NCBI RefSeq assembly: GCF_035084215.1
Contig: NC_090340.1
Coordinates: 4,774,001-4,838,000, forward strand
From: Heptranchias perlo
Taxonomy: Eukaryota
Reading direction: 5' to 3'
DNA: 64,000 nucleotides
Part shown: positions 6,840 to 54,356 of the stretch, piece by piece
Layout of the letters: each line of letters begins with the position of its first letter
How positions within the stretch are numbered: the stretch's first letter is position 1
Notes under the pieces: generated by a model
Seen by the model: the letters and a program-made list of their open reading frames with translations, nothing else
Databases searched by the model: none
What the model was told of the DNA's origin: nothing
Program-made: the position numbers and the translations under genes

Positions 6840-6961
6840 TTACCCATAAAATGAGTCTGATTTCAAATGGTCCACAATGAGGGTGGTCCCCATCAGAATC
6901 ACCGCTGAACCCAACAGGAAACGACACGACCTGATAGTTTGGAATAGGTCACTGGAGCCAG
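6840..6961 (-). pseudogene. Orphan terminal TM exon of an activating-type (Arg-in-TM) Ig receptor, copy A
   Basis: Reads PGSSDLFQTIRSCRFLLGSAVILMGTTLIVDHLKSDSFYG*. Gap-free paralog at 47892-48013 has the same stop position. The acceptor here is AC instead of AG. Confidence 0.55.
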
Positions 6962-13639: not shown

Positions 13640-14900
13640 CTCCGTGCTACGAAGCCTGTGAGTGGATCATCTGCTGTTCAAGCTCAGTCTGTGTCTCCAG
13701 TAAGATCTCGGCGGTGAAGGCAAAGTATCTCCCATGGATGCCAGTGCCAGAGTGGGAATCGTGATTCAAAAATTGATGGAGAAAATGGTTTGGAAGACAC
13801 ATTAGTGACACAAGATCATCTAAGGAAAAGAAGTTAACAAGGATCTGTAATCACCTCAGGTCACGTTGTGATAACTTTCTCACTGGGGAGTGATGACATT
13901 TATGGATGTACGAATTGTTGAGATGCAGTTTAGGATGGAGACGAAGGTACTTTTATGACCGGAATGGGATCACTGTCAGAAACCTCGAGAACATTCTGGA
14001 TTAATTACATTTTGAACTCGGGGCTGAAATATTCCTGATCAAGCAGTTAGTGACTGATGAGTTTACAGTTCTCACCGAGCGACAGGTTAGTTGAAGGAGG
14101 GTAGGGAGCTGTCGGCATCTGAGTGGAGTTGAGCTCCTGAAAATCAAATACCAGGTTGTATATGGGGATTTTAAGAGATCTAAGAGCAATAGTCGAGTGT
14201 TGAAAAGGATGGAGATAAAGTTAATTCGAACATTGAATAATTACTCCCGCAATTCCAATATGAAACTGCGACCTCGTCAGTCTGAAGTTCTAAAAAACAG
14301 CATGAGGTTCGGGATTATTCTCACATGAGGAATTATTGATAAACCGAACAAGATAAAGTGACATGGAAAGAGAGAAGACAAGGAGCAAGTGTGTGGGAGG
14401 GTTGAGGGGAGTGAAAAATAGAGAAGGATTGGACCTTGATCAATTTTTAAATATGAACGATTCGCCCATGGATGAGGCAGATAGATAATGGGGTTCAGGA
14501 TGGAGCGGTATTCCAGATTTGCCGATTTAAAAGCCATTGTCTCGGCCACAGTAGGAGCAGTGCGCGAAATTTTGATGTGAAGAAGGGTGTAAGATTTATT
14601 TACTTGGTGATATCAGTCCTAGATCTCCTGAATCAAAAGACATTAAAGGGAGACTCAGTTGAAGGTATCTGCGGCGAGTCCCACTAGTGATCAAGGGGAA
14701 TAAATGTAGAAAGAGTAAGAGGAGGTTAGAAGATTTTTTTTACGCAAAGGGTTATTAGAGCGTGGGGTAGAACCGCAGAAGGGCAATTGGCGGAAATCAA
14801 ACACAGGGGTTCGGGGGGAATTACAATAATATTGATAGTTGCGGGGGGGTGGCAGGGGACTGGAATGAGGTAGAGATCTCTTTCTGGGCTTAACCTTCTG
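13640..14900 (+). mobile_element. Ancient, highly degenerate CR1 remnant in V-C1 intron
   Basis: Residual FFTQRVIRAW-like codons near 14735-14765; paralogous at about 28000-29270 and 57700-58950. Confidence 0.45.
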
Positions 14901-16732
14901 GAATTTAACCGGAAAGTAAATGGACACGGAACACGGAGACAGTCAAATTTAGCGAGACTCTGCCGATGAATGGTTCACAGGTGGGTCACTCAATGAGGAT
15001 TCATATTGCGCCAGCAAGGCTCCGAGTCGAGAGCGGAGATCCGTCGACTTCCTTGATCAGTGAGAAGTGGTAGAGGCGGATCTCTGCAACTGCAGAATAT
15101 TGGGAGCTTGATAAATTTGATACTACTTTGGCCCCTCTCCCTTTTAATTCGTGATATCGGAAACGGACGAAGACTTGAAATAATTCACACAGAGCGAGAA
15201 CCGGGGTCAGGACCGGAACATTATCTGGGAAATGAATCGAGTGAGTGAGCTCTGGTACAGGACAACTGCACGCGTTTTGGACCTTAACAACGAGTCCCAG
15301 ACTGGAACTGAGACAATAATTTCCTTCATGCTTTTGTATTAATTTATCACTCTGTCAGTGAAAGCATATTATAGAATACTCTCTCCCTATTAGCAACGCA
15401 GAAGCCTATTTAGAACGTCGTTCTAAATCATAGTGAAGCATAAGCAGAAATAGACACCGAGGGCTTTAAGAGATCCCACGGGACGGGTTCGGTTTAACTC
15501 GGACTTAAATTCATTTCAATGCCCAGACATGGGGCCTTCCCGTCAGCGAGTGCTGGATAAAGACAAGAACTAAATAAATATTGCCATGGACTGTTTCAAG
15601 CAAATCAAGCGTTCTTTATTAATACTAAAATGGCGGTAAAATTTCCCTCTTAAAGGGACTCTGCAGATGCTCCAGGCTCTCCCTTCTCGGCGTCTGTTGT
15701 TTCCATTCTCTAATATAATATACGGGTAGTGATTTCAACTCAATTCCTTTAACTCCTTTCCAGTGCCGCTAACTCCTGTGAAGATTACCCGCCTGCACTC
15801 TCCGTCTCTCACACTCCTCTGCACAACGGCTGTTTTTTTCCCCCGAGGAGTTGAACCTAACTTGGTATGAAAATGGCCCCAAAATTACATCTGGGATAAA
15901 CTTGGTAGAAACACGGAGCGAAGAGGGATTGTATCAAGTTTCCAGCTCCTTGATCTCTGTGTATCTGCCGCGTGCCCCATCCCTCTCTGCTGGCTCCAGC
16001 CAACTCCAGCTGCACGGTTCGTGATCCGGGTAAGAGACCCACCTGATCAGCACTGCAGTAAGCTGTATCTGTGTTAAATACAGGAGCCATTCAGGGCTTT
16101 TCTGTCACCACTAATCCGCACCAGAATATTGTCAATGCAGTGCGTTTGAAGGGGCTGAATATGCTCATTGCAATATCACAAAGCATTTGAGGCGGCCACT
16201 CACATTGGTCACCATGCAAGATGGAGTCTTGCGCAATTGAACGGCGGATCCATGGTCAAAATGTAAAAATGAACCATACTTTCGAAACACAGTATCTGAC
16301 GTAACACTCTGAGCGGGGAACCCCATCCCAACTGCCCAGTTCTTCAACTACATGGGCAGGTTCTCAATTGTCTGCTACTGGAGGCGTCCATTAGCGATCG
16401 GTGTCAGGATTGCACTTCTTGAGAAATGTCAATGATCTGGATGAAGGCGTCCACAAGTTCACTGATGGTACAACTATATGTGCTAAAGTCAGAACCATTA
16501 AGGAGAAAACATTTACAATCGGATCGAGATGCGATCGGGGAATCGGCCTGTATCTGGCAGATGTCAATTAATGCAGATAAATGTAGTCTAATACTTGTGG
16601 GCAGGTTTAATACCAAGCATTGTGCACAGTGCTAGGCTCTGAATTAAAGTCTGTTGAGGGGCAAAGATTATTGGGTGTTCGTGTCTGAATCTCCCAAATT
16701 CCACGACTAATGCCGATAGATGATAACCAAAG

Positions 16733-16824
16733 GTACGGTACCATAGTGGTTATGTTACTGGATTAGTAATCCGGAGGCATGGACGACGATTCAGAGTCAT
16801 GAGTCCAAATCCTGCCACGGCAGG
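16733..16824 (+). mobile_element. tRNA-derived SINE head
   Basis: A-box-like taccatagtgg and B-box-like gagtccaaatcc; directly joined to a LINE. Confidence 0.6.
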
Positions 16825-18779
16825 AGCAGCACCAGGCGTACCTAAAAATGAGGTGCCAATCTGGTGAAGCGACAACTCAGGACTACATGCATGTTAAAAA
16901 TGGTATAAACAGAGCTAAGCGATTCCACAACCAACGAAACAGATCAAAGCTCTGCAGTCCTGCCACGTCCAGTTGTGAATGGTGGTGGACAATTAAACAA
17001 CGTAACAGGAGGAGGAGGCTGCGTAAACATCGCCATCCTCAATGATGGCGGAGTCCAGCACGTGAGTGCAAAAGACAAGGCTGAAGTGTTTGCAACTATC
17101 TTCAGCCAGAAGTGCCGAGGGATGATCCATCTCGGCCTCCTCCCGATATCCCCACCATCACAGAAGCCAGTCCTCAGCCAATTCGATTCACTCCACGTGA
17201 TATCAAGAAACGGCTGAGTGCACTGGATACAGCAAAGGTTATGGGCCCCGACAACACCCCAGCTGTAGTGCTGAAGATTTGTGATCCAGAACTAACTGCG
17301 CCTCTAGCCAAGCTGTTCCAGTATAGCTACAAAACTGACATCCACCCGAAAATGTGGAGAATTGCCCAGGTATGTCCTGTCCACAAAAAGCAGGACAAAT
17401 CCAATCCGGCCAATTGCCGCACAATCAGTCTACCCTCAATCAATCAGAAAAGCGATGGAAGGTGTCGTCGACAGTGCTATCAAGCGGCACTTACTCAGCA
17501 ACAACCTGCTCACCGATGCTCAGTTTGGATTCCACCACGACCACTCGGCTCCAGACCTCATTACAGCCTTGGTCCAAACATGGACCAAAGAGCTGAATTC
17601 CGGAGGTGAGCTGAGAGTGACTGCCTTTGACATCAAGGCATCATTCGACCGAGTGTGCCACCAAGGAGACCTAGTAAAATTGAATTCAATGTGAATCAGG
17701 GGGAAAACGCTCCAGTGGCTAGAGTCATACCTAGCGCAAAGGAAGATGGTAGTGGTTATTGGAGGCCAATCATCTCAGCCCCAGGACATTGCTGCAGGGG
17801 TTCCTCAAGGCAGTGTCCGAGGCTCAACCATCTTCAGCTGCTTCATCAATGACCTTCCCTCCATCATAAGGTCAGAAATGGGGATGTTCGCTGATGATTG
17901 CACAGTGTTCAGTTCCGTTTGCAACCCCTCAAATAATGAAGCAGTCGGAGCCCGCACGCAGCAAGACCTGGACAACATCCAGGCTTCGGCTCATAAGTGG
18001 CAAGTAACATTCGCGCCAGATAAGTGACAGGCAATGATCATCTCCAACAAGACAGAGACTCACCACCTCCCCTTGACATTAAACTGCATTACCATCGCCG
18101 AATCCCCCACCATTAACATCCTGGGAGTTACCATTGACCAGAAACCTAACTGGACCAGCCATATAAATACAGTGGCTACGAGAGCAGGTCAGAGGCTGGG
18201 TATTCTGCGGCGAGTGACTCATCTCCTGACTCCCCAAAGTCTTTCCACCATCTACAAGGCACAAGTCAGGAGTGTGCTGGAACACTCTCCACTTGCTTGG
18301 ATGAGTGCAGCTACAACAACACTCAAGAAGCTCGACACCATCCAAGATAAAGCAGCCCGATTGAATGGCACTCCATCCACCACACCACCCTAAACATTCA
18401 CTCACTTCATCACCGGCGCACTGTACCATCCACAGGATGCACTGTAGCAACTCGCCAAGGCTTCTTCGACAGCACCTCCCAAACCCGCGACCTCTACCAC
18501 CTAGAAGGACAAGAGCAGCAGGCACATGGGAACAACACCACCTGCACTTTCCCCTCCAAGTCACACACCATCCCGACTTTGAAATATTCCTTCATCATCA
18601 CTGGGTCAAAATCCTGGAACTCTCTTCCGAACAGAACTGTGGGAGAACCGTCACCATACAGACTGCAGCGGTTCAAGAAGGCGGCTCACCACCACCTTCT
18701 CAAGGGCAATTAGGGATGGGCAATAAATGCCGGCCTCGCCAGCGACGCCCGCATCCCATGAATGATTTTTTTTTAAAAA
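16823..18779 (+). mobile_element. LINE family A insertion specific to copy 1
   Basis: RT motifs and family A tail; absent at the equivalent site in copies 2 and 3 (about 31155 and 60895). Confidence 0.9.
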
Positions 18780-20474
18780 TAGAGTATAAAGATGTTTAGC
18801 CGGGACAAACCGATAGAAACAAAGAGCACCATAATGTCCTTTCCCATTGTCAGCCCTCATCTACAATATTGTGTCCAGTTCTGTTTCCCTCATATGGTGA
18901 GAGTTATTGGGGCATTGGGGAAAAAGTTCAGCGCAGAGCCACTATATTCATACTATTTTAAAAACCCTTAGTTATCACGATAGGTTCAAGGATTTGGGTA
19001 TTTGTACTCTCGAAAAGCGTAGACTTTGGGATACTTAATTGAACGATGAAGGGACTAGTCTGTGCACACGTGGATAGATCACTTGAATTAAATTATTACC
19101 GAGAACGAGGGCTCATGGGTACATGTCATTTAAGCACAGAACACGGTTTGATATCTGGAGGATAGTCTTCTTCCAGAAGGTAACTGAACTTTGGATTAAA
19201 TCGAAGTCTCGTGCAGTGAGTGCGGATTCTCTGCAAAGTTACAAAAGGAGCTCGACGAGTTCCTGAGGGAGGCTGATATCGTGGTGTACAAAGGATAGGT
19301 GTGATGTTGCAAGACGCACCTCAAGGTCAATGTTATTTACTGGAACTCGTTTCTCATCACCTTCGGGTCGGAGAGAAAGCACCTATAACTCTGTGAGGGA
19401 TTTTGCCTCTCCCTGGAGACCAAACGGCACAAACAATCACGGGGAGAGAGACAGACAGACACATCCGTACATAAAGACACGGCCCCCTCCACACCCACAC
19501 CCTCCCCCCACAACACACACACACAAATATTTACATACACATGATGAACAAAACTACATAATCATTAATTAAATGCGATTATTAATCCGAATTAAATGTT
19601 GATATTATCAGACATGGAAAGTCCCTGTGTGCTTTGCATTCCGCTGTACTTTGGCCGCTTGATGCTGAGATACGATGGAGGCGCATTAGTATTTCGGTAA
19701 GAGACGATAGCTGTGATATGTCGGTGCTGCCTGATATCTGACGTTGATTAAATATTTCGCAATATCTCGCCTATAAAATGCTGAAATTCCACTTTCTGTG
19801 TCCCTTTCAGCTGACGGGAACAGTACATCCCTCTACCCCCTGGTGTCGGGGTGTGCAGCAGGCGGGTTAATAATTCTAGTGCTGGTAATTCTCGTCAAGC
19901 GATGCAATTTAGTCAGAACTGAAGGTAAGACCTGACACGATCCTGATTCAGAATTAAGTTTGTTAGTTACATTTCAGCATGGCGGCAGCGAGGGCGAGGG
20001 CACGGAGTATGCGGCGTCAACTGGGATCTAGATTTTGGGAGCGGTGTCCGTCACACGAAGTGAGTTTATATTCCTGGGGTCGAATTTTGTTGCGAGGGCA
20101 AAACTTAAACCCAAGAGATCCCTCAGAATAATTGCAGCAGGTCTGAACATTAAAGCCACCTGTAATTTCGGTTCGTGTTTTTACAGCAACTGAAGGTGTT
20201 GAACTTCCCCTACATCGCCCCGGGACTCTGAGACTGAACCATGCATCGGAAAGGGGTCAAAGAATCATAGAATCATAGAATCATAAAAAGGTTGCAGCAC
20301 GGAAGGAGGTCATTCGGCCCATTGAGTCCGCGCCGGCTCTATGCAAGATCATTCCCGCTTGTCCGACTCCCCCGCCCTATTCCAACGACTTGTTTTCAAG
20401 TAATCATCCAGTTCCCTTTCGAAGGCCATGATTGAATCTGCCTCCACCACCCGCTCGGTCAATGCATTCCAGAT

Positions 20475-21889: not shown

Positions 21890-22045
21890 CAGGGACATTG
21901 GTCCCGGTCGTGCTCGGGTGTAACCCGCCTCGCTTGTACACGTTCCACCTTCCCCAGAACCGGTCCCAATGTCCCAGGAATCTAAATTCCTCCCTCCTAC
22001 ACCATCCCTGCAGCCACGCATTCATCCTACCTATATTGATCCTAA
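21890..22045 (-). mobile_element. CR1 ORF1 SGNH/esterase-domain fragment
   Basis: RMNAWLQGWCRREEFRFLGHWDRFWGRWNVYKRGGLHP, matching the DGLH-region of CR1 ORF1 esterases. Confidence 0.75.
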
Positions 22046-24669
22046 CGAGTCGCTCTATAAATGTTTTCCTCATGTCACCTTTGTTTCTTTTGTCAATCAC
22101 CTTAAATCTATATCCTCTGGCTCTTGCGCCCTTCCGCCAATGGGAACAGTTTCTCTCTTTCGACTCTGTCCATACCCTTCATGATTTTGAATACCTCTAT
22201 CAAATCTCCTCACAATCGTCTCTGTTCCAATAAGCACAAAACCAGCTTCTCCACTCTATCCGCGTAGCTGAAGTCCCTCATCCCTGGATTTATTCCAGTA
22301 AACCTTTTCTGCACACTCTCAAAGGCCTTCAAATATTTCCTAAAGTGCGGTGCCCAGAACTGGACACAATACTCCAGTTGTGTCCAAATGAATGTTTTAT
22401 AAAGGTTCATCATGACTTCCATACTTGTGTAAACTATGTCTTTATTTATAAAGCCCGGGATCCCATATGCTTTTTTAACCGCTTTCTCCACCTGCCCTGC
22501 TACCTTCAACGATTTCTGCACGTAAACCCCCGAATCTCTCTGTTCCTGTACCCATTTTAGAATTGTGCTCTATAGTTTATATTGCCTCTCCTCGTTCTTC
22601 CGACCAAAATGTACCACTCAGCATTTTTCTGCATTAAATTTCATCTGTCACTTGTCTGCCCATGCTACCAGCCTGTCTATATCCACTTGAAGTCTATCAC
22701 TATCCTCCTCACTGTTTACTAGACTTCAAAGTTTTGTGTCATCTGCAAATTTTGAAATTGTGCCCTGTACACCCAAGTGCAAGTCATTAATACATATCAA
22801 GAAAAGCAGTGGTCCTAGCACAGACCCGTGGGGAACACCATTGTATACATCCCTCCAGTCCAAAAAACAACCGTTCACCACTACTCTGTGTTTCCTGTTA
22901 ATTAGCCAATTCTGTATCGATGTTGCTACTGCCCCCTTTATTACATGGACCGCAATCTTGATGAAAAGTCTAACATGCGGCACTTTATCAAAAGCCTTTT
23001 GAAAATCCACATACACCACATCAACCGCATTGCCCTCATCAACCCTCTCTGCTACCTCATCAAGAAACTCTATCAGATTAGTAAAACACGATTTGCCTTT
23101 AATAATTCCCTGCTGGCTTTCCCTAATCAAGCCACACTCGCCCTAGTGACTGTTACTTCTGTCCCGGATTCTCATTTCTAAATGTTTCCCCACCACTGAG
23201 GTTTAACTGACTGGCTGATGGTTGCTGGGTTTACCTTTACACCCTTTTTTGGAACAAGGATAAAATTTGCAATTCTCCAGTCATCTAGCACCACCCCCGT
23301 ACCTATGGATGTTTGGAAGATTATGGCCAGTACCTCCGAAAATTTGCACCCTTACTTCCCTCAGCAACCTACGATGCATCCCATACAGACCAGGTGACTT
23401 TGTACAGCTGGCCTTTCTAGTACCTCTTCTTTATCAATTTTTAGCCAGTCCAGTATCTCAACTATATCTTCCTTTGCTGAGACTCTGGCAGCATCTTCTT
23501 CCTTGGTAAGGACAGATGCAAAGTACTCATTTAGCATTTCGGCTTATGCCTCCATGTGACATCTCCTTTATGGTCCCGAATTGTCCACTTCCCTACTCCT
23601 ACGGCCCGTTTACTGTTTACATGCCTGCAGAAGACTTTTGCTTTCCCTTTTATGTTGGCCGCCAGTCTATTCCCATATTCTCTCTTTGCCCCTCTTATTT
23701 ACTTTTTCACTTCGCCTTTGAAATTTCTATATTCGTCTGGTTCTCACTTGCGTTGTCAACTTGACATCCGTCACACGCCCCTTTCTTTCGATTTCATTCA
23801 CTGTCTATCTCCTTTTTCATCCAGGGAGCTCCAGCTCCAGTTGCTCTAATTTTATGCCTCGTGGGAATGTGCCTCGACTGTACCTGAACCATCTCATCTT
23901 TAAAGGCCGCCCACTGTTCAATTACAGTTTTGACTGCCAATCTATGATTCCAATTTACCCGGGCCAGATCTGTTCTCATCCCATTGAAATTGGCTCTCTT
24001 CCAATTGAGTGTTTTTACTTTTGAGTGGTCCATGTCCTTTTCCACAGCTATTCTAAACCTTTTTGATACAATCGCTGCTCTCTAAATGCTCCCGCAGTGA
24101 CACTTGTTCCACTTGGACGGCCTCATTCCCTAGAACCAAGTCCAGCAATGACTCCTTCCTTGTTGGTACTGAAACGTACTGGTCAAGAAAGTTATCCTGA
24201 ACACTTTTCAAATATTCTTGCCGCTTATAATATTATTGTTATCTCAGTCTATTTTAGGATAGCTAGTTATCACTACTTAATAGCTTTTGCAACTCTTTGT
24301 GATTTCACTGCAAATTTGCTGCTCTATATCCTTCCTACAAGTTGGCGGCCGACAGAAAACACCCAGTAATGTAATGGCACCTCTTTTATTTCTTAACTCT
24401 CACCAAATAGATTCTGTCCTTAACCCATCCTGGACATCCTCTCTCTCCAGTACTGCAATATTCTCCTTAATCAATACGGGCACCCCGACCCTCCTTTCTT
24501 TCCTTCCCTATCTATTCTGAACACCTTGCATCCAGGAATATTTAGGCCCCAATCCTGGCCTTTTTTGAGACATCGTATTCCCATGTGGCTCTTTGCGTCT
24601 GCAGCTCACCAACCTTGTTCGCCATGCTTCGTGCCTTTACACACATGTACTGCAAACCAGTCTTAGACT

Positions 24670-25585
24670 TTAGAAACACAGAAACACAGAAAATAGGAGC
24701 AGGAGTGGGCCATTCGTCCCTTCGAGCCTGCTCCGCCATTCAATGTGATCATGGCTGATCCTCTATCTCAATACCATATTCCAGCTCTCTCCCCATACCG
24801 CTCGATGGCTTCTGTGTCTAGAAATCTATCTAGCTCCTTCTTAAATATATTCAGTGACTTGGCCTCCACAGCCTTCTGTGGTAGAGAATTTCTCAGTATC
24901 ACCATGCTCTGAGTGAAGAAATTTCTCCTCATCTCAGTCCTAAATGCCCTACCCTGTATCCTGAGTCTGTGACACTCGTTGTTGACCGTCCAGCCAAGAG
25001 AAACATCCTCCCTGCATCCAGTCTGTCTAGTCCTTTCAGAACTGTATACGTTTCAATGAGGTCCCCTCTCATTCTTCTAAACTGCAGTAAACTCAGGCCT
25101 AGTCGACCCAATCTCTGCTCATACGACAGTCCTGCCATCCCACGAATCAGTCTGGTGAACCTTCGTTGAACCCCCCTTTATGGCAAGTATATCCTTTCTT
25201 AGGTAAGGAGAGAAAAACTGCACACAATGCTCCAAGTGTGGTCTCACCAAGGACCTGCATAACTGCAGTAAGACATCCTTGCTCCTGTACTCAAATCCTC
25301 TTGCAATGAAGGCCAAAATACGATTTGCCTTCCGAACTGCTTGCTGCACCTGCTTGTTTGATTTAAGTGACTGGTGTACAAGGTCACCCAGGTCCCTTTG
25401 TACAAAAAAATTCCCAATCTATCACCATTTAAATAATGCTCTGCCTTTCGATTTTTCCTTCCAAAGTGGATAACTTCACATTTATCCACATTATACTGCA
25501 TCTACCATGTATTTGCCCACTCACTCAGCTTGTCTAAATCGCCATGAAGCCTCTTTGCATCCTCCTCACAACTCACAATCCCACG
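24670..25585 (-). mobile_element. CR1 LINE (HER1-like) 3' fragment upstream of copy 2
   Basis: RT C-terminal ORFs and HER1-type tail; orthologous to 54357-55258. Confidence 0.85.
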
Positions 25586-25715
25586 TTTCTTGTACTCTCT
25601 CTTTGTCTGATCTCTTGTCAAACACAGACCAATCTCACCGCAGCTTCACGTACATCGCTGCAAAAATGTGACCAACTTTGCGATTAGTCAAGAGCTGTCA
25701 CAATTCGGAATCGTA

Positions 25716-25858
25716 CACGTGATGCAAATCTCTTGACCACCAATGAGATTTGGGTGGTTGTAATTTCAGCTCTGACGTAAAAGTGAAACCAGTGCATTGA
25801 ATTGCCGCTTCAGATATCTTATGGAGCGTCTCATTGATATATTATGGAGCGTCTCATT
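25716..25858 (+). promoter_or_regulatory. Putative proximal promoter of copy 2 (E-box, CCAAT, CRE-like, IRF-like)
   Basis: CACGTG 25716, CCAAT 25740, TGACGTA 25773, AAAAGTGAAACC 25779-25790, 23-bp tandem duplication 25813-25858; lies 100-240 nt upstream of the ATG. Confidence 0.4.
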
Positions 25859-25957
25859 GCAACACACTCACCGCCAGATTATCATCTGATCTCTGAGTCC
25901 CACGCACCCTTCAGTGTTACCAGAAACGAGTGATGAAGTTCATCGCCGTTGCTCAGA

Positions 25958-26012
25958 ATGTCTGCGCTTGATATGCTGCTGTACCTCGCAGCCCTGGCCA
26001 TTATTTACACAG
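25958..26012 (+). CDS. Copy 2 exon 1: signal peptide MSALDMLLYLAALAIIYT
   Basis: ATG, hydrophobic core, phase-1 CAG|GT donor; conserved in all three copies. Confidence 0.75.
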
Positions 26013-26208
26013 GTTTTTGTATACGTGCCTTTTAAATATTAAAGTGTGAATAATAAGTCCATTAGCAGTATGGAGGCAGCTTCTCTTAAATGTTTATTGC
26101 AGTTTACTCATTTCCTTTCGTTCTAATTCTGCCGCATTATTTCTTCCCTTTTAATCCTCACGATCACTATTCCCGACTGTAACCTGTGCTTGTGTTTATT
26201 TCTGACAG

Positions 26209-26529
26209 TTATTAATGGGACCGCTCTCACAGTGACTCAGTTCCCCGCCCGCGTGACTGCGGTGAAAGGTACAAATGTCTCCATTTATTGCTTTTTCGCG
26301 CTTTTGGATCGCAACGCATTGGTGGATGTTTACTGGCGGAGAGCCGGCCAGGACGGGATTTTGGATTCGAGTGCAGACAAAAGGAAAACATTTACACCAT
26401 TGAAGAAAGAATCTGCCGAGTTTCACCTGCTGAATGTAGGTTTCCAGGAATCTGGAGTCTATTATTGCAGCATCAGAGATTGGAGAGGAAAGATTTCCAA
26501 CGGGAATGGGACTGACATTATTGTGTATG
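26209..26529 (+). CDS. Copy 2 exon 2: V-set Ig domain with germline-joined J-like GNGT motif
   Basis: LTVTQFP...NVSIYC...VYWRR...ESGVYYC...GNGTDIIVY; ctgacag| acceptor and |gtgagt donor, phase 1-1. Confidence 0.93.
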
Positions 26530-29500
26530 GTGAGTATCGCTAATGGAACTTCGTAAAATTCTATGGGTATAGATTGGAGAATATTTAACAAAGATCAGAA
26601 ATGTATTTTCTGACAGGACTTTTGATGTTTCTCTCAGTTCGGTGCGGTGCAGCTCCTTTCCACATATTTGCAGTGAATCCTGTGAGTTTACACAGAGCAG
26701 CACCGATTACCCTGCACGGGGCAGTGGAATTCAGATTATCTGACTTCAGTCAATCGTTGTTCTCTTATCCCGTATAATTTATATAAATCTGTTTTACCTT
26801 TTTTTCATTAATTCTCTGGAAGTGGACATCGCTGGCACGGTCGGCATTTATTGTCCATTCCTAGTTACCAAGATGGCGGTGGGTCTGCTCCTTGAACCAC
26901 TGCAGTCCATGTAGTGAAGGTGCTCCCACAGTGCTGTTAGGTAGGGAGTTACAGGATTTTGACTCAGCGATGATAAAGCAAGGAAAATATATGTCCATGT
27001 GAGCATGATGTGTGACTTGGAGGGGGGGATCTTGGAGGTGATGGCGTTCCCATGCACCTGCTGCCCTTGTCCTTCTTGGTGGCGGAGGCTTCGGGTTTGA
27101 GAGCTGCTGTCGAAGCAGCCTTGGCGAGTTGCTTCCGTGCATCCTGTAGATGGTGCGCCGGTGGTGGACGGTATATAAGGTGGTGAAATAAGTGCCGACT
27201 AAGCAGACTGTTTTTGTTCAGGATATTGTTGAGCTTCTTGACTGTTGTAGCTGCGCCATCCAGGCAAGTGGAGAATATTCCATCAAACTTCTGACTTGTC
27301 GGTGGCGGTGCCGCTTTGGGAAGTTAGGAGGTGAGTCAGTCGCCGAGGCAGACCCAGCGTCTGACCTGCTCGAGGAGCCGAAGCATTTATGTGGCCATTT
27401 ATATCACATATTTACAAATCGATAGTGTTGAATGAGATTGTTTGTGTTTACTTTTATACCTATATCGAATAAGAAAAATGTGTCTTCGATTCTGAACAGA
27501 ATCCTGCTTGGAATCACTTCCTTCAATCCTCTAATCACTGAGGGACCGCTCCCGACCCACTTTTTACCGCACTCCAAAGACCAACAGTAACTCTCCCCGA
27601 GTGCTTGCCAATTCAAACGTGGGACACAACAGTGAGATTGTCAATATCTATCGCCAAATAGATACAAGTACTAACACACAGACAGATAAAAAGGACAGGG
27701 GGTGGGGGGTGTAGAGGAGAACACGACAAGGCGAGGAGCGAGCAAAGAAAAATCAACTGGACAGAGAGGATTGACAGGCTAAACACTGAACAACATTTTA
27801 CTGCATAAAACAATAGATTTTATTTACACTTTGGATTCATTGTGCTTGCTAATAGATTTGATTTACAGAGATAGATAAATTAGCTCTGATAGATTTGTTA
27901 TCGATTGATAGATTTGTTTATATGGGAAATAGATTTTAGATGTTGACAGGTGGGAATGGGTTTTTCAAGCATTGGATAAGGAACATTTACATGAAACAGA
28001 ACTATGTGCCGCGAGGCCTGTGAGTGGATCATTTGCTGTTCAAGCTCAGTCTGTGTCTCCAGCAAGATCTCGGCGGTGAAGCCAAAGTATCTCCCATGGA
28101 TCCCGGTGCCAGAGTGGTAATCGTGATTCAAAAAAGGGATGGAGCAAATGGTTTGGAAGACACATTAGTGACACAAGATCATCGAAGGAAAAGAAGTTAA
28201 CAAGGATCTGTAATCATCACCTGCAGGTCACGTGGAGATAACTTTCTCACTGGGGAGTGATGACATTTAGTGGATCGACCAATTGTTGCGATGCAGTTTG
28301 GGATGCAGACGAAGGTACTTTTATGACCGGAATGGGATCACTGTCATATACCTCGAAAAAAATATGGATTAATTACATTTTGAACTCGGGGCTGAAATAT
28401 TCCTGATCACTCAGTTGGTGACTGATGAGTTTACTGTTCTCACCGAGCGACAGGTTAGTTGAGGGAGGGGCCGAGCTGTGGGCATCTGAAAGGAGTTGAG
28501 ATCCTGAAAATCAAATACCGGCTTGTAAAATGGGATTTTAATCGATCTAAATGCAAAAGTCGAGTGTTGAATAGGATGGAGATAAAGTTAATACGAACAT
28601 TGAATAATTACTCCCGCAATTCTAATATCAAACTTTAACCTCGTCAGTCTGAAGTTCGAACAAACAGCATGAGGTTCAGGATTATTCTCAAATGAGGAAT
28701 TGTTGATAAACCGAACAAGATAAAGTGACATGGAAAGAGAGAAGACAAGGAGCGAGTGTGTGGGAGCGTTGGGAGGGAGTGAAAAATACAGAAGGATTGG
28801 ACCTTGATCATTTTTTAAATATGATCGATTGGCCCATGGATGATGCAGATAGATAATGGGGTTTAGGATGGAACGGAATTCCACATTTGCCTATTTAAAA
28901 GCCATTGTCTCGGCCACAGTAGGAGCAGTGCGCGAAATTTTGATGTGAATGAGAGGGTGTAAGATTTATTTCCTTGGTGATATCCGTCCTAGATCTCCTG
29001 AGTCAAAAGAAATTAAAGTGAGACCCAGTAGACGGGATCTCCGACGAGTCCCACTGGTGATCAAGGGGAATAAATGTAGAAAGAGTAAAAGGATTTTCGA
29101 AGATTTGTTTCACTCAAAGGGTTATTAGAGCGTGGGGTAGATCGGCAGAAGGGTTATTGAAGGAAATCAAACACAGGGATTAGGGGGGAATTACATTAAT
29201 ATTAATGCGGGGGTGGGCAGAGTACAGCCCTGAGGTAGAGAACTCTTTCTGAGCTTAAACTTCTCTAATTTAACCGGGAAGTAAATGGACACGGAACACG
29301 GAGACAGTAAAATTCAGCGAGACTCTGCCGATGAATGGGTCACAGATGGGTCACTCAATGAGGATTCATATTGCGCCAGCAAGGATCCCAGTCGGAAACT
29401 GAGATCCGTCGACTTACTTGATCCTTAAGAAGTGGTGGATACGGATCTCTGTAACTGCAGAATATTGGGAGGTTGGTAAATTTGATCCTACTTTGGCGCC

Positions 29501-30128
29501 TCTCCCTTTTAATTCGTGATATCGGAAACGAACAAAGACTTGAAATAATTCACACAGAGCGAGAACCGGGGTCAGGACTGGAACATTATCTGGGGAATGA
29601 ATCGAGTGAGTGAGCTCTGGTACAGGACAACTGGACGCGTTTTAGACCTAAACAACGAGTCCCAGACTGGAACAGAGACAATAATTTCCTTCATGCTTTT
29701 GTATTAATTTATCACTCTGTCAGTGAAACCATATTATAGAATACTGTCTCCCTTTTAGCAACGCAGAAACCGATTTAGAACGTAGGCCTAAATCACAGTG
29801 AAACACCAGCAGAAATAGACACCGCGAGATTGAAGAGATCCCACGGGACTGTTTCGGTTTAACTCGGACTTAAATTCATTTCAGTGCCAAGACATGGGGC
29901 CTTCCCGTCACCGAGTGCTGGATAAAGACAAGAACGAAATAAATATCGCCATGTTCTGTTTCAAGCAAATCAAGCGTTCGTTATTAATTCTAATATGGCG
30001 GTAAAATTTCCCTCTTAAAGGGACTCTGCAGATGCTCCATGCTCTCCCTTCTCGCCGTCTGTTCTTTCCTTTGTCCAATGTAATATACGAGTAGTGATTT
30101 CAACTCAATTCCTTTATCTCCTTTCCAG

Positions 30129-30410
30129 TGCCGCCAACTCCTGTGAAGATTACCCGTCTGCTCTCTCCGTCTCTCACACTCCTCTGTACAACGGCCGTTT
30201 TTTTCCCCGAGGAGTGAAACCTCACTTGGTATCAAAATGGCTCCAAGATTACATCTGGGATAAACTTGGTGGAAACACGGAGCGAAGAGGGATTGTATCA
30301 AGTTTCCAGCTCCCTCATCTCTGAGCAGAGTGGGACGGTTTATATCTGCCAGGTGTCCCATGCCTCTCTCCCGGCTCCAGCCAACGCCAGCTACACGGTT
30401 CGTGATCCGG
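30129..30410 (+). CDS. Copy 2 exon 3: C1-set Ig domain with premature TGA
   Basis: LTLLCTTAVFFPEE*NLTWYQN...GLYQVSSSL...YICQVSHASL; phase 1-1, 282 nt. Confidence 0.9.
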
Positions 30411-30699
30411 GTAAGAGACCCACCATCTCACCACTGCAGTAAGCTGTATCTGTATTACATATAGGAGTGATTCAGGGACTTACAGTGTCAAAAAAGCTTT
30501 TGAGGCGGCCCCTCACAGTGCTCACTGTGCAAGAAGGATTCCTCCGCAATTGAACGGCGGATCCATGTTTGGTTGGGGAATTAATTGCCTTCTCGTTGAC
30601 AGTGGGTAGACTTTAATAGTTGTGGGACAATGCAGCCAGTCAGGATACGTGGAGGAGTAACAGAAGTTGGTACTTGCTGGTCAAAATGTTGAAATGAGC

Positions 30700-31760
30700 C
30701 ATACTTTCGAAACACAATACCTGACGTAATGCAATGAGCGGGGAAACCCATCTCCACTGCCCAGCTCTTCAACTACATGGGCAGGTCCTCCATTGTCTGC
30801 TACTAGAGGGGTCCATTAGCGATCGCTGTAAGAATTGCTCTTCTTGATTCATATCAATCATCTGGTTGAAGGCGGCCACTAGTTCACTGATGGTACAAAT
30901 ATCTGCTGATGTCAGAACCCTTAAGGAGAAAACATTAACAATCGGATCTAGATGCGATAGGGGAATGGGCCTGTATCTGGCAGATGACATTTAAAGTAGA
31001 TAAATGTAGTCTAATGCATGTGGGGAGGTTTAATACCAAACATGTGTGTACAGTGCTAGGCTCTGAATTAAAGTCTGTTGAGGGGCAAAGAGACATGGGT
31101 GTTAGTGTCTGAATCTCTAAATTCCACGACCAAGGCCGAGGGGTGATGACCAAAGCTAGTAGAATATAAAGATGTATAGCCGGGACAAACCGATAGAAAC
31201 AAAGAGCACCATAATGTCCTTTCCCTTGAGCAGAACCCATCTGCAATATTGTGTCCAGTTCTGATTCCCTCATATGGTGAGAGTTATAAGGGCATTGGGG
31301 AAAAAGTTCAGCGCAGAGCCACGAGATTGATATTATTTTAAAAACCCTTAGTTATCACGATAGGTTCAAGGATTTGGGTATTTGTACTGTCGAAAAGCGT
31401 AGACTTCGGGATATTAATTGAACGATGAAGGGACTGGACTGTGTACACGTGGATAGATCACTTGAATTAAATTGTTCGCGAGAACGAGGGCTCGTGGGTA
31501 CATGTCATTTAAGCACAGAATAAGGTTAGATATCTGGAGGATAGTCATCGTCCAGAAAATCACTGACCTTTGGATTAAGTCGAAGTCTCGTGTGGTGAGT
31601 GCGGATTTTCTGCAAAGGTACAAAAGGAGCTGGACGAGTTCCTGAAGGAGGCTGATATCGTTGTGTACAAAAGATAGGTGTGATGTTGCATGACGGCCCT
31701 CAAGGTCAATGTTATTTACTGGAACTCGTTTCTCATCACCTTAGGGTCGGAGAGAAATCT
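30700..31760 (+). mobile_element. Ancient CR1 remnant in C1-TM intron
   Basis: WQMTFKVDKC-like and KELDEFL-like remnants; paralogous at about 16260-19360 (split) and 60430-61480. Confidence 0.6.
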
Positions 31761-32209
31761 CCTATAATTCTGTAGGGGATTTTGCCTCTCCCTGGAGACC
31801 AATCGGCACAAACAATCACGGGGAGAGAGACAGACAGACACATCCATACAAAAAGACACCGCCCCCTCCCGCTAAACCCCACCCCCCACACCCCCCGGCC
31901 CCCACACCCCCACAACAAGCACACAAATATTACATACACATAATGAACAAAACTGCATAATCATTAATTAAATACAATTATTAATCCGAATTAAATGCTG
32001 ATATTTTCAGGCATGGAAAGTCCCGGTGTGCTTTACACTGCGCTGTACTTTGGCCGTTTGATGCTGAGATACGATGGAGTCGCCTTAGTATCTCGATGAG
32101 AGGCGATAGCTGTGATATGTCGGTGCTGCCTGATATCTGACGTTGATTAAATATTTCGCAATATCTCGCCTACAAAATGCTAAAATTCCAATTTCTCTGT
32201 CCCTCTTAG

Positions 32210-32323
32210 CTAACGGCAACAGTACTTTCCTCTACTCCCTGGTGTCGGGGTGTGCAGCAGGCGGGTTAATAATTCTCGTGCTGGTAATTCTTGTCAAGCG
32301 ATGCAATTTCGTCAGAACTGAAG
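32210..32323 (+). CDS. Copy 2 exon 4: transmembrane exon (uncharged TM)
   Basis: ANGNSTFLYSLVSGCAAGGLIILVLVILVKRCNFVRTE; tag| acceptor and |gtaaga donor, phase 1-1. Confidence 0.9.
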
Positions 32324-32919
32324 GTAAGAACTGACACGATCCTGATTCAGAATTAGGTTTGTTAGTTAAATTTCAGCACGGCGGCAGCGAGGGGGAGGGC
32401 ACGGTGTCTCGGGCCCAGACTGGGATCTAGATTTTGGGAGCGGTGTCCGTTACACTAAGTGAGTTTATGTTCCTGGGGCCGAATCTTGTGACGAGGGTCA
32501 GACCTTAAACCCAAGAGATCCCTCAGAATAATTTCAGCAGGTCTGAACATTAAAGCGACCCGTAGTTTCGGTTCGAACTTAGTGCTTTGCAACAACTGAA
32601 GGTGGTGATGTGAATCGTTTACAGTAAATGTAGGGTTGTGTCGGGAGGGGCGACAAATCTGGGGTAAAGGGCGGTGGAACTGGTGATGGGAATGTGACAC
32701 GTGGTATTCGGTTGCAAAAGGCTTCGGATCTCGCCCAGCAACAGTACCGGATGTGACGGGTCAAGTTCTAATCAGGAGAATTGAGTGACCGTTCAGATCA
32801 TTTTCTATTGATCGGTGATTCTGATCACTTTGCGGGAATGTTGGGTATATTTTGGCGGACACATCGCGCATCTGGTTCATGGTGAAATTGACATTGGTCT
32901 CAATTTATTTCTCTGCTAG

Positions 32920-32963
32920 ACACGGAGATTAGTGAGGAGAGAACCGGCCACTTCGAGGAGCAG
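32920..32963 (+). CDS. Copy 2 exon 5: cytoplasmic exon DTEISEERTGHFEEQ
   Basis: Pyrimidine tract with tag| acceptor and |gtcagt donor, phase 1-0; near-identical exon at 62642-62685. Confidence 0.8.
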
Positions 32964-33494
32964 GTCAGTGTCATGCTTGTGTAACGAGAAATAGACTGCT
33001 ATTGCCATCTAATGCATATTTATACCACATTTAAACCGGTATCACTAGGCCATCAGGACGGCTCTCAATAACTGCGGAGCACACCGTCAACACTTGCGGG
33101 TTTATTGTTCCCCAGAGACCTTCGTTCAGCTGAAAGTGTGGTCTCTGCCCTGTCAGTGCCGCGATTGTATCTGTATTAATGCAGCACTCCAATTGTGGCA
33201 GGCGCCGTTGTAGATATTCGTGTCTTGTCAGTGCGGTCGATTGGCTATTCACCTATGGGAGCGTCATAGTTTTGTTCGATCCTGTTCTCACTTGACATCT
33301 CCACCCATGAACTTTCCAGCAGGGTCTGTGGGTGTTGACTGGGACGGAATGCTGGCCGAGATTGTCCCCATCCTGACCCAAAGGCACCGAAACCAATTGT
33401 CTATCTTGAGATGAGCAAGCTCAGAACTCGGAAGTGCATTAACTACTCAACAGCACAGGGGCCAGGCCTTGACCTATATTTGTCAATGTATATT

Positions 33495-35245
33495 CTCAAT
33501 GATGGCGGAGTCCAGCACGTGAGTGCAAAAGACAAGGCTGAAGCGTTTGCAACCATCTTCAGCCAGAAGTGCCGAGTGGATAATCCATCTCAGCCTCCTC
33601 CCGATATCCCCACCATCACGGAAGCCAGTCTTCGGCCAATTCGATTCACTCCACGTGATATCAAGAAACGGCTGAGTGAACTGGATACAGCAAAGGCTAT
33701 GGGCCCCGACAACATCCCAGCTGTAGTGCTGAAGACTTGTGCTCCAGAACTAGCTGTGCCTCTAGCCAAGCTGTTCCAGTACAGCTACAACACTGGTATC
33801 AACCCGACAATGTGGAAAATTGCCCAGGTATGTCCTGTCCACAAAAAGCAGGACAAATCCAATCCGGCCAATTACCGCCCCATCAGTCTACTCTCAATCA
33901 TCAGCAAAGTGATGGAAGGTGTCGTCGACAGTGCTATCAAGCGGCACTTAATCACCAATAACCTGCTCACCGATGCTCAGTCTGGGTTCCGCCAGGACCA
34001 CTCGGCTCCAGACCTCATTACAGCCTTGGTCGAAACATGGACAAAAGAGCTGAATTCCAGAGGTGAGATGAGAGTGACTGCCCTTCACATCAAGGCAGCA
34101 TTTGACCGAGTGTGGCACCAAGGAGCCCTAGTAAAATTGAAGTAAATGGGAATCAGGGGGAAAACTCTCCAGTGGCTGGAGTCATACCTAGCACAAAGGA
34201 AGATGGTAGTGGTTGTTGGAGGCCAAGCATCTCAGCCCCAGGGCATTGCTGCAGGAGTTCCTCAGGGCAGTGTCCGAGGCCCAACCATCTTCAGCTGCTT
34301 CATCAATGACCTTCCCTCCATCATAAGATCAGAAATGGGGACGTTCGCTGATGACTGCACAGTGTTCAATTCCATTCGCAACCCCTCAGATAATGAAGCA
34401 GTCCGAGCCCGCATGCAGCAAGACCTGGACAACATCCAGGCTTGGGCTGATAAGTGGCAAGTAACATTCGCGCCAGATAAGTGCCAGGCAATGACCATCT
34501 CCAACAAGAGAGAGTCTAACCACCTCCCCTTGACATTCAACGGCATTACCATCGCCGAATCCCCCACCATCAACATCCTGGGGGTCACCATTGAAAAGAA
34601 ACTTAACTGGACCAGCCATATAAATACCGTGGCTACGAGAGCAGGTCAGAGGCTGGGTATTCTGCGGCGAGTGACTCACCTCCTGACTCCCCAAAGCCTT
34701 TCCACCATCTACAAGGCACAAGTCAGGAGTGTGATGGAATACTCTCCACTTGCCTGGATGAGTGCAGCTCCAACAACACTCAAGAAGCTCGACACCATCC
34801 AAGATAAAGCAGCCCGCTTGATTGGCACCCCATCCACCACCCTAAATATTCACTCCCTTCACCACCGGCGCACTGTGGCTGCAGTGTGCACCATCCACAG
34901 GATGCACTGCAGCAACTCGCCGTGGCTTCTTCGACAGCACCTCCCAAACCCGCGACCTCTACCACCTAGAAGGACAAGGGCAGCAGGCGCATGGGAACAA
35001 CACCACCTGCACGTTCCCCTCCAAGTCACACACCATCCCGACTTGGAAATATATCGCCGTTCCTTCATTGTGGCTGGGTCAAAATCCTGGAACTCCCTTC
35101 CTAACAGCACTGTGGGAGAACCGTCACCACACGGACTGCAGCGGTTCAAGAAGCCGGCTCACCACCACCTTCTCAAGGGCAATTAGGGATGGGCAATAAA
35201 TGCCGGCCTTGCCAGCGACGCCCACATCCCGTGAACGAATAAAAA
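33495..35245 (+). mobile_element. Young LINE family A insertion in last intron of copy 2
   Basis: RT ORF continuous except one TAA at 34143-34145; flanked by tatatt at 33489-33494 and 35256-35261; absent in copy 3. Confidence 0.93.
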
Positions 35246-35464
35246 TATATATATATATATTGCAGAGAATTTCTCCGGCTGGGAATTATTTTCCTTCCTT
35301 GTCCTTATCCGGCCTTTTATTACACCGCCAGCGCCATTTGAGCAATCACCTGCACTGATCAGACTTACCCAATCCTTAACCGATGCCATTGGGTTTTAGT
35401 GGCCCTGTACGGTGCTGTTTGTGATTTGATGTGAAGCTAATCTTTCTCCAAAAACTTTCTTCAG

Positions 35465-35635
35465 GCTGTGGGAGGAAGAGAGGACGGGAGTCCGTCTTAC
35501 GCTGTTATCAACTTCAGCGGTCACAGGAACATTGGAAAACCCAGAGGTGAGGAAGATGGAACCGTCTATGCCCAGGTACAGTCGAGAAACGGAGCAGCCC
35601 ATTCCAACCAGGAATGGTCCGGTACTGGCGTCTGA
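35465..35635 (+). CDS. Copy 2 exon 6: terminal cytoplasmic exon with PSYAVI and ITSM TVYAQV
   Basis: ctttcttcag| phase-0 acceptor; 56 aa plus TGA; gap-free paralog at 63448-63618. Confidence 0.85.
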   Translation, partial: AVGGREDGSPSYAVINFSGHRNIGKPRGEEDGTVYAQVQSRNGAAHSNQEWSGTGV

Positions 35636-36619
35636 CCTCAGTAATGCACATTGAAGTCATAGAACGCTTCGTGTGAGTAACAGATCCTATTGATCTTTCA
35701 TTGTTGCTTCCACAGACCAAGCAAGGGACGGATTGTACACTGACTAACGCGTCTCCGGATCTGACCGGCTCCCAGAAAATGGCAAGAAGGAAACAGAAAG
35801 AAAACGTAGCGGAGTATGCGGCGATCAGGATCAACAAACCAAGGGAAGAATACGGGATTGTATAAACACCAGCAAATGTCCAGTGATGTTAAAGTCACAC
35901 AGGGGCTGACAACCTTGGCGTCTGTAGTCGACACCTACCTGTATTTAGTGGGGTGTTTGTAAACCGGATTGTCATTTATTGGAATGAGAGAAGGAGTAGC
36001 AGCTTTTACTGGCAGAGTGACACTGCGATTTGGAGGTTGCGCTTATTCTTGAAATCTGCACTTCCAGTGAATGGAGGAGTCAATGCTTAACTCTTTTATA
36101 GGTTTCAAATAGGACCAAAGGAAATGGGAGCGTCTTGTTTCGTAGGGTGGAAATCGATGAGGCCAGTTATTGTGGGTCAGTTCTGTTAATTTAGAAGGAG
36201 TGAGCAGTGGAGTTTATTTTGGGCCTGTGTCGCGAATATACCGGATTTCGGGGAGGGTTCTGAATGTATTCCATCTAAATATTAAATCATTATCAGGCTC
36301 CTAACGGGCCAACTGAATGGTGTTTGGTGACTGGACATCAATTACCGCGGCCCTTTCTGTGCAGAAACAACTATTCCTTCAGTTTGCTTTAGCGAAATTC
36401 ACACTTTCAATGTTGAGAAATCTTTTCACTCCCGATTTCGCTCTTTCTGGATGCATTTGACACTTTTAATCAAATCTGTCCCAGTGCCGAACATTTCCGT
36501 CTCTGGTTATTTTAATCACTCAGTTTGCCTCTTGTGACAGGAATGAACCAGGTGTTTTCGAATGTGCAGTGGGACAGGCCTGGGACCGACTCCGGCTCCC
36601 TGCCTCACTGTGAAATTCA

Positions 36620-40134: not shown

Positions 40135-41463
40135 TATCAGTCTACTCTCAATCATCAGCAAAGTGATGAAGGTGTCGTCGACAGTGCTATCAAGCGGCAC
40201 TTACTCACCAATAACCTGCTCACCGATGCTCAGTTTGGGTTCCGCCAGGACCACTCGGCTCCAGACCTCATTACAGCCATGGTCCAAACATGGACAAAAG
40301 AGCTGAATTCCAGAGGTGAGGTGAGAGTGATTGCCCTTGATATGAAGGCAGCATTTGACCCAGTGTGGCACCAAGGAGCCCGAGTAAAATTGCAATCAAT
40401 GGGAATCAGGGGGAAAACTCTCCAGTGGCTGAAGTCATACTTGGCACAAAGGAAGATAGTAGTGGTTGTTGAAGGCCAATCATCTGAGACCCAGGACATT
40501 GTTGCAGGAGTTCCGCAGGGCAGTGTCCTTCCCTCTATCATAAGGTCAGAAATGGTAACGTTCGCTGATGGTTGCACAGTTTTCAGTTCCATTCGCAACC
40601 CCTCAAATAATGAAGCAGTCCGAGCCCACATGCAGCAAGACCTGGGCTACATCCAGGCTTGGGCTCATAAGTGGCAAGTAACATTCGCACCAGACAAGTA
40701 CCAGGCGATCACCATCTCCAACAAGAGATAGTCCAACCACCTCCCCTTGACATTCAACGGCATTACCATCGCCGAATCCCCCACAATCCACATCTTGGGG
40801 GTCACCATTAACCAGAAACTTAACTGGACCAGCCATATAAATACTGTGGCTATAAGAACAGGTCAGAAGCTGGGTATTCTGCGGCGAATGACTCACCTAC
40901 TGACTCCCCAAATCCTTTGCACCATCTACAAGGCACAAGTCAGGACTCTAATGGAATACTCTCCACTTGCCTGGAAGAGTGCAGCTCCAACAATACTCAA
41001 GAAGCTCGACACCATCCAGAACAAAGCAGCCCGCTTGATTGGCACCCCATCCACGACTAAACATTCACTCCCTTCACCACCGGCGCAAAGTGGCTGCAGT
41101 GTGTACCATCCACAGGATTCATTGCAGCAACTCGCCAAGGCTTCTTCGACAAAACCTCCCAAACCCAGGAGCTTTACCACCCAGAACGACAGGAACAGCA
41201 GGTACGTGGGAACAACACCAACTGCACGTTCCCCTCCAAGTCACACACCATCCCGACTTGGAAATATATCGCCGATCCTTCATCATCGCTGTGGCAAAAT
41301 CTTGGAACTCCCTACCTAACAGCACTGTTGGAGAACCTTCACCACACGGACTGCAGCGGTTCAAGAAGGCGGCTCAACGCCACCTTCTCAAAGGCAATTT
41401 GTGATGGGCAATACATGCTGGCCTCGCCAGCGACGCCAACATCCCACGAACGAATAAAAAAAA
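40135..41463 (+). mobile_element. LINE family A 3' fragment
   Basis: RT ORFs 40279-40731 and 40747-41319 plus family A tail. Confidence 0.9.
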
Positions 41464-47891: not shown

Positions 47892-48013
47892 TTAGCTTAA
47901 AAAGGGTACTGATTTGAAACGGTCCACAATGTGGGTAGGTCCCATTAGATTGAGCATTAACCCCACCAGGAAATGGCACAGCCTGATGGTTTGGAATCGG
48001 TCAGTAGACTGTG
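47892..48013 (-). pseudogene. Orphan terminal TM exon of an activating-type Ig receptor, copy B
   Basis: cttctgttgctttccag| acceptor, phase 1; (A)QSTDRFQTIRLCHFLVGLMLNLMGPTHIVDRFKSVPFLS*; 21/40 aa identical to 6840-6961. Confidence 0.55.
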
Positions 48014-54355: not shown

Positions 54356-54356
54356 T

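Follow-up and report, generated by a model that had tools for sequence, protein, structure and literature searches.

Does the tandem array of antigen-receptor-like genes in Heptranchias perlo preserve a relative of the ancestor from which rearranging receptors arose, or does it belong with receptors of a more familiar kind? The array lies in the 64,000 nucleotides analysed here (the window: NCBI RefSeq contig NC_090340.1, forward-strand positions 4,774,001 to 4,838,000, assembly GCF_035084215.1; coordinates below count from its first letter). An earlier note, made from the sequence without database searches, had read it as three copies of one gene that joins a germline V domain and a C1-set domain to an inhibitory tail. 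We consider it highly probable that the three copies in the window arose by tandem duplication of a single gene, and that this gene belongs to a large family of non-rearranging, SIRP-like surface receptors of sharks, rays and chimaeras. No copy among the three (A, B and C) is intact, and copy A is a dead pseudogene.

Comparison of the window with itself recovers the three colinear plus-strand duplicates that had been described. Copy A spans 11689-19924 within a duplicated unit of 11655-20202, copy B spans 25958-35865 (unit 22038-36020) and copy C spans 55621-63848 (unit 51696-64000). Similarity between B and C is ~88-92% over long blocks that include introns, and between A and B it is ~87-90%. 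When the window was searched in translation with the copy B V exon, exactly three V exons were recovered, and a six-frame scan of the window with V and C1 exons found no additional immunoglobulin (Ig) exon on either strand. Genes from outside the family are absent from the window. The copies are not the equivalent genes they were taken for; each is damaged.

Three database proteins (P0147 of Heterodontus, and P0152 and P0153 of Heptranchias) map colinearly onto copies B and C and delineate seven exons in each. From first to last, these encode a split leader, a VJ-type V domain, a single C1-set domain, the stalk and transmembrane (TM) segment, and a cytoplasmic tail divided among three exons (cyt1, cyt2 and cyt3). 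Window exons were searched singly, and full-length analyses were run on the same three proteins. All seven coding exons of copy B are bounded by AG and GT sites and have compatible phases, and their lengths total 1077 nt, equivalent to 358 codons plus a stop. The corresponding lengths in relatives are 358 amino acids (P0147) and 360 amino acids (P0153).

The copy B exons, all on the plus strand, can be followed from start to stop. The leader exon (25958-26012, MSALDMLLYLAALAIIYT) opens with ATG and ends in phase 1 at the donor CAG|GTTTTT; from the second Met of the leader onward it is identical to the N-terminus of P0152. The VJ exon, with its V-set domain (26209-26529, phase 1 to 1, AG and GT sites), is intact. 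The C1-set exon (30129-30410) has 282 nt, also runs from phase 1 to 1, and is interrupted by an in-frame TGA at 30215-30217. The stalk, an uncharged TM segment and the start of the tail are encoded at 32210-32323 between AG and GT sites, followed by cyt1 (32920-32963, phase 1 to 0, D-TEISEERTGHFEEQ), which was placed by tblastn of P0147, P0152 and P0153. The cyt2 exon (35465-35575) encodes ...SPSYAVINF...GTVYAQ and ends at the donor CAG|GTACAG. The last exon, cyt3 (35716-35865), encodes TKQGTDCTLTNASPD...VAEYAAI...EEYGIV and closes with the stop codon TAA at 35863-35865. Once spliced, the tail reads TVYAQ|TKQG... and continues to a canonical immunoreceptor tyrosine-based inhibitory motif (ITIM), VAEYAAI.

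This model replaces one of six exons and ~328 amino acids. The donor at 35575/35576 had been missed, and the reading frame was instead followed through CAG|GTACAG to a stop at 35635, so that the reported 'TVYAQV...TGV*' is partly intron. Both the 328-residue length and the proposed immunoreceptor tyrosine-based switch motif (ITSM), TVYAQV, are artefacts of that read-through, and the gene ends not at 35635 but at 35865. Isoforms of relatives differ in ways that match the exon boundaries exactly, which counts in favour of the seven-exon structure: P0148 (Heterodontus isoform X3) lacks exactly cyt2, P0001 lacks the C1 domain when compared with its sister isoform P0147, and P0007, also without C1, does not differ from P0008 in the TM segment or anywhere after it.

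Intact and near-identical relatives of copy B, at ~97% identity, are present in the RefSeq proteins of Heptranchias perlo. Residues matching P0152 number 105/106 in the V domain, 88/93 in C1, 37/37 in the TM exon, 15/15 in cyt1, 36/37 in cyt2 and 45/49 in cyt3. At the position of the TGA the codon is TTC in copy C and TTG in copy A, and P0152 has Leu. The third tyrosine motif of the tail is lost in copy B (LTNASP versus LTYASL in relatives). Apart from the stop codon in C1 and this lost tyrosine, copy B is intact.

Profile searches support the domain assignments. Pfam V-set matches the V exons of copies B (7e-6) and C (3e-6), both above the cut-off. Pfam C1-set (PF07654, gathering threshold 21 bits) matches the C1 exon of copy C at 2.7e-9 and 37.7 bits, and the portion of the copy B exon past the stop at 1.9e-6 and 28.6 bits, confirming the true C1-set domain of the earlier note. 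The V exon itself encodes the J-like G strand, NGNGT.(I/L)IVY, and a consensus GT donor comes directly after this strand; the spacing is YYC-x11-GNGT and not, as had been written, YYC-x10-GNGT. No recombination signal sequence (RSS; heptamer, 12- or 23-nt spacer and nonamer, with at most 2 mismatches) occurs on either strand of the whole 64 kb, and a lone CACAGTG at 26228 within the copy B V exon is unaccompanied by a nonamer. The germline-joined V domain free of an RSS thus stands, as does the uncharged TM segment, which is found in copies A, B and C. Each copy has a single C1 exon, and the TM exon comes directly after it. The V-domain cysteines are 58 residues apart (copy B V exon, 26283-26468), a spacing that is short for a V-set domain and family-wide in the alignment.

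The AlphaFold model of P0153 has a predicted local distance difference test score (pLDDT) of >85 over most of both Ig domains, plus a TM helix. Foldseek with this model places Ig light chains and T-cell receptor (TCR) chains at the top, in agreement with the light-chain- or TCR-like ectodomain that had been proposed.

How widespread is this type of gene? A HMMER search with the copy B V exon against 1.8 billion representative proteins gave 146 matches, the best of which are RefSeq models of sharks, rays and a chimaera at 50-64% identity. More distant matches in reptiles, a teleost and coelacanth involve the V domain only and have no C1 domain. With P0147, there are 32 matches at E<=1e-10, all chondrichthyan. 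Gene models of the family exist in RefSeq or UniProt for at least 13 chondrichthyan species, in the genera Heterodontus, Heptranchias, Scyliorhinus (two species), Hemiscyllium, Chiloscyllium, Carcharodon, Cetorhinus, Mustelus, Mobula (two species), Hemitrygon, Amblyraja and Callorhinchus. They are most commonly named 'tyrosine-protein phosphatase non-receptor type substrate 1-like', that is, SIRP-alpha-like; other automatic names are tapasin-related, NCR3 ligand-like, CD276, MHC-like and Ig lambda-like. In an alignment of 19 members the landmarks of the V and C1 domains are conserved, as are four motifs in the tail, and there is a VPPTP linker; most relatives have a single C1 stretch.

The family is real, and so far it has been described by automatic annotation only. 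A literature search, with most subscription journals outside its coverage, found no paper describing it. To that extent the suggestion of an undescribed family survives, although gene models already exist across these species and mostly carry a SIRP-alpha-like name. A proper description of the family would tidy this inconsistent annotation.

In intact relatives the four tail tyrosines lie in the motifs S/LxYAxL, TVYAQT, LTYAxL and xEYAxI. Some members (P0161, P0011 and P0014) have an Arg-containing TM segment and a short tail in place of the usual TM segment and tail. The occurrence of such members beside inhibitory ones indicates that the family is paired, with inhibitory and activating versions. 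In an intact inhibitory member, the V domain would bind a ligand, Src-family kinases would phosphorylate the four tail tyrosines, and phosphatases of the SHP-1/SHP-2 type could then dock on the tail and damp cell activation, as for SIRP-alpha. Sister genes with an Arg-containing TM segment and short tail may instead signal via an adaptor bearing an immunoreceptor tyrosine-based activation motif (ITAM).

The resemblance to SIRPs extends to gene organization, and the earlier description of the tail architecture as SIRP-like and inhibitory was right. Mouse SIRP-alpha has eight exons, one each for the leader, the V domain and the TM segment, two for C1 domains and three for the cytoplasmic part, and a natural short isoform skips the C1 exons (PMC12324903). 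The shark family shares with SIRPs a VJ-type V domain followed by C1-set sequence, and the exon plan from leader through V, C1 and TM to three cytoplasmic exons; the putatively inhibitory tail of intact relatives, with its four tyrosines, is SIRP-like as well. Isoforms without C1 are also shared: the C1-less models are P0001 of Heterodontus, P0007 of Mobula, P0006 of Scyliorhinus and P0030 of Callorhinchus. So are sister genes in which the TM segment has a basic residue and the tail is short. In contrast to SIRPs, the family is large and expanded in chondrichthyans, and the window copies are damaged.

Several observations sit less comfortably with a SIRP connection. SIRPs have two C1 domains (PMC2785349), whereas the shark family has one. 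Against solved structures, the single C1 exon matches UrIg2, Ig heavy chains and major histocompatibility complex (MHC) proteins ahead of any SIRP (for copy C, UrIg2 is first at 2e-10), and the single V exon matches TCR V-alpha weakly and no SIRP at E<=0.01. Scored with the family profile, the V-C1 unit as a whole is no closer to SIRP-alpha than to a light-chain V-C or UrIg2, with 66 bits for the best stretch of 2rcj, 64 for SIRP-alpha d1-d2 and 59 for UrIg2. A tail-only database search, limited by its word filter, returned chondrichthyan proteins only and no bony-vertebrate protein. These points weigh against the SIRP-like reading. An alternative is that the family is an independent antigen-receptor-like VJ-C1 lineage, a pre-RAG receptor relative with an inhibitory tail and no relative of SIRPs. 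The UrIg2 match of the C1 exon and the TCR V-alpha matches of the V exon speak for this alternative, as do the one-C1 layout shared with TCR and light chains, the light chains and TCRs that lead the Foldseek results, the exclusively chondrichthyan close relatives, and the failure of the literature search to find a paper on the family.

We nevertheless regard a separate lineage as unlikely. Parallels with SIRPs are seen in the exon plan, in the tail with its four tyrosines, in the V-only isoforms and in the pairing with forms that have an Arg-containing TM segment (PMC12324903). SIRP-alpha is also among the top four solved structures matched by the family profile: 2rcj (filed as IgA1 heavy chain) at 4e-36, UrIg2 at 4e-35, a Fab at 3.5e-31 and SIRP-alpha (2wng) at 4e-31. 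The best stretch of 2rcj aligns through residues that resemble a lambda-type V-C. SIRP-alpha 2wng aligns colinearly over V plus C1 with 64 bits, and its d3 domain gives 48 bits. In the ESM atlas, two SIRP-alpha clusters are the nearest among those with names (0.96), which we treat as a lead only. Furthermore, SIRPs themselves combine a V domain with C1-set domains, and kinship with the precursor of antigen receptors was proposed for them long ago for that reason (PMC2785349). The resemblance to a pre-RAG ancestor was thus overstated for this locus, since the argument has been made for SIRP-alpha and, more strongly, for UrIg and UrIg2 (PMC12227049). Judged on sequence and gene structure, the family probably works like SIRPs and is related to them; orthology with SIRPs is not established, given the two C1 domains there and the one here. 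We give a similarly small chance to the idea that the single-C1 family is no SIRP orthologue but an old, separate lineage of antigen-receptor-like genes, membrane-bound and non-rearranging, with either UrIg/UrIg2 or the Ig/TCR stem as its sister. If this were true, the pre-RAG receptor's chain layout of one V and one C domain would have been kept, with signalling through paired inhibitory and activating versions.

Other known systems differ more clearly. UrIg and UrIg2, at present the candidates for the pre-RAG gene, share a single-exon VJ domain, a split leader, C1-set domains and the lack of rearrangement, but UrIg2 has nine to eleven C domains where the shark family has one; the same account reports neither an ITIM tail nor a paired activating form for them, and describes them as single genes in the MHC and antigen-receptor complex and not as a large tandem family (PMC12227049). 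We rejected membership on the basis of the many C domains there (PMC12227049) and the single C1 exon followed by a TM exon here. Ig light chains and TCR chains share the two-domain V-C1 ectodomain; unlike them, the shark genes have neither an RSS nor a separate J segment, and they carry their own TM segment and signalling tail. The window genes are accordingly not placed with the rearranging Ig and TCR genes, there being no RSS in the window and a J-like strand within the V exon.

In NKp30/NCR3 the VJ exon is likewise joined in the germline and has a G strand of the GxGT type, but the protein has a single V domain, no C1 domain and a charged TM segment. The window copies depart from it in having a C1-set exon and, in A, B and C, an uncharged TM segment, and NKp30 does not appear when solved structures are searched with the V exon at E<=0.01. 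PRARP was likewise considered and set aside, PRARPs having a single V domain. Non-rearranging VJ multigene families with inhibitory (ITIM-bearing) and activating versions also include NITR of teleosts, APAR of hagfish and the TCR-like gene of lampreys, none of which is known to have a true C1-set domain. NITR has been treated as a paired VJ-type family (PMC2442602), and both SIRPs and NKp30/NCR3 are counted among the VJ-type members of the Ig superfamily (PMC11599192). Sharks, rays and chimaeras possess a family of paired, SIRP-like receptors that is large and expressed, and its ectodomain is laid out as one V and one C1 domain, exactly as in a TCR or light chain. Once properly described, it would be a data point for the debate over which non-rearranging V-C1 genes are nearest to the antigen-receptor ancestor.

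Are the genes in the window themselves expressed? RNA from one sample (runs X1-X3) was available as Logan contigs, which were aligned to window positions 58001-64000. Run X1 covers the C1, TM, cyt1, cyt2 and cyt3/3' untranslated region exons at a depth of 30-250, and introns are nearly uncovered. One X1 contig spans C1|TM|cyt1|cyt2 with joints at 60077>61925, 62042>62640 and 62684>63447. Exon-only coverage together with a spliced contig establishes that the material is RNA and that the C1|TM|cyt1|cyt2 junctions are real.

The same contigs do not establish expression of the window copies. They are 95-99% like copy C but not identical to it, and they carry copy B letters at 8/11 informative places. 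Their TM exon is 6 nt longer, as in P0153 (..RDP-VL-ANRNN..), which has two extra residues (VL) at the C1|TM joint relative to P0152. At the corresponding acceptor place, copies B (32204-32209) and C (61925-61930) have CC, not AG. The V-to-C1 joint falls outside the RNA coverage. Given the mismatches and the P0153-like TM exon, the RNA documents splicing of a paralogue and not expression of the window copies. By sequence, its most likely source is a close paralogue outside the window, rather than A, B or C. The splice junctions that had been predicted are therefore seen joined from C1 to cyt2, although in contigs from this paralogue. At the C1|TM joint, some paralogue uses an acceptor that lies 6 nt further upstream.

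Copy C resembles copy B in layout, with other lesions. Its leader exon is at 55621-55675 and its VJ exon, which is open, at 55872-56192 (all plus strand). In the latter, 1 nt has been deleted and 4 nt inserted, a frameshift pair (-1/+4) that rewrites ~22 residues, from the C' to the D strands, and introduces a new Cys; the ancestral peptide VLDSSADKRKTVMPFKKGSAE can still be read in an alternative frame at 56017-56079. The C1-set exon (59796-60077) is intact, and RNA contigs align to it; an RNA contig also aligns to the TM exon (61931-62044) and to cyt1 (62642-62685). At cyt2 (63448-63558) the acceptor is mutated, with TG for AG at 63446-63447. In cyt3 (63699-63848) the third tyrosine is lost (LTSASL) and VAEYAAI is kept. 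Three tail motifs are thus retained in both B and C, namely Y1 SPSYAxI (with Pro at -2), Y2 TVYAQT or NVYAQT, and Y4 VAEYAAI, and Y3 is lost.

Decay has gone further in copy A, also on the plus strand. The leader exon (11689-11743) has lost its donor (AAG|CT). The V-exon remnant (11944-12144) has a deletion of 117 bp that includes the first Cys, then a 3-bp deletion, and its donor has changed from GT to AT. The C1 exon (15764-16029) carries a +1 frameshift and a 17-bp deletion. The TM exon (19811-19924) is open; no cytoplasmic exons were found downstream of it, and similarity to copies B and C stops at 20202.

Could copies B and C, or one of them, nonetheless yield working receptors through alternative splicing, with B skipping C1 and C skipping cyt2? 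This is conceivable, although we doubt it. The copy B C1 exon, at 282 nt and phase 1 to 1, can be skipped without a change of frame, and V-only models are known from Heterodontus, Mobula, Scyliorhinus and Callorhinchus. Skipping of cyt2 is seen in Heterodontus isoform X3, a naturally occurring form of SIRP-alpha lacks the C1 domains (PMC12324903), and the copy B V exon is all but identical to that of intact P0152, as given above. A receptor from copy B would be possible only by such skipping, in a V-only form, and one from copy C would have to contend with a V segment that is scrambled and a cyt2 exon whose acceptor is dead. Against functional products stand the loss of the third tyrosine in both copies, the rewritten stretch with its new Cys in the copy C V domain, and the want of any RNA assignable to B or C. 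The substitutions tell in the same direction: from C1 to cyt3, B and C differ at 29 non-synonymous and 8 synonymous places, and in the three tail exons at 18 and 1, respectively. This pattern points to relaxed constraint rather than to selection on a signalling tail.

A different challenge is that the lesions are read from the assembled sequence, and that the 1-nt deletion in copy C adjoins a short T run. Were the lesions errors of assembly or sequencing, B and C would be intact genes, but this is very improbable. The TGA in copy B is a substitution and not an indel, and neither the 4-nt insertion nor the AG-to-TG change in copy C is a homopolymer error. Moreover, there are several independent lesions per copy, accompanied by the non-synonymous excess, and copy A has large deletions. 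We conclude that the array of SIRP-like genes is a birth-and-death corner of the family, in which duplicates are at differing stages of decay. At the level of the window the result is an ordinary one, typical of birth-and-death evolution in a cluster of immune receptor genes.

Traces of the activating side of the family also occur in the window. The copy A leader (MSIRDVLRYLSALAIIC...) matches that of the activating-type P0161 at 16/20 residues, above its match to B or C. Copy A thus pairs an activating-like leader with an inhibitory-type TM exon, a combination suggestive of gene conversion, or of shuffled exons, between paired genes. Two orphan exons on the minus strand, at 6849-6962 and 47901-48013, match the exon that encodes the Arg-containing TM segment and short tail of activating members, with 66% and 46% identity, respectively, to residues 219-256 of Heptranchias P0161; they also match Chiloscyllium P0011. 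A six-frame scan found no V or C1 exon upstream of either on the minus strand. By their sequence and orientation, these exons resemble remnants of activating partner genes that lay in inverted orientation.

Outside the exons, much of the window is repeat sequence of the RVT_1 retrotransposon type. A stop-broken fragment with an RVT_1 domain occupies 33411-35186 (plus strand) in the cyt1-cyt2 intron of copy B and is absent from copy C. It is one of several copies, 86-92% alike, of a single retrotransposon without long terminal repeats (non-LTR), the others lying at 17035-18765, 2717-4209 and 40136-41460. They were inserted independently, in different introns of copies A and B as well as between genes.

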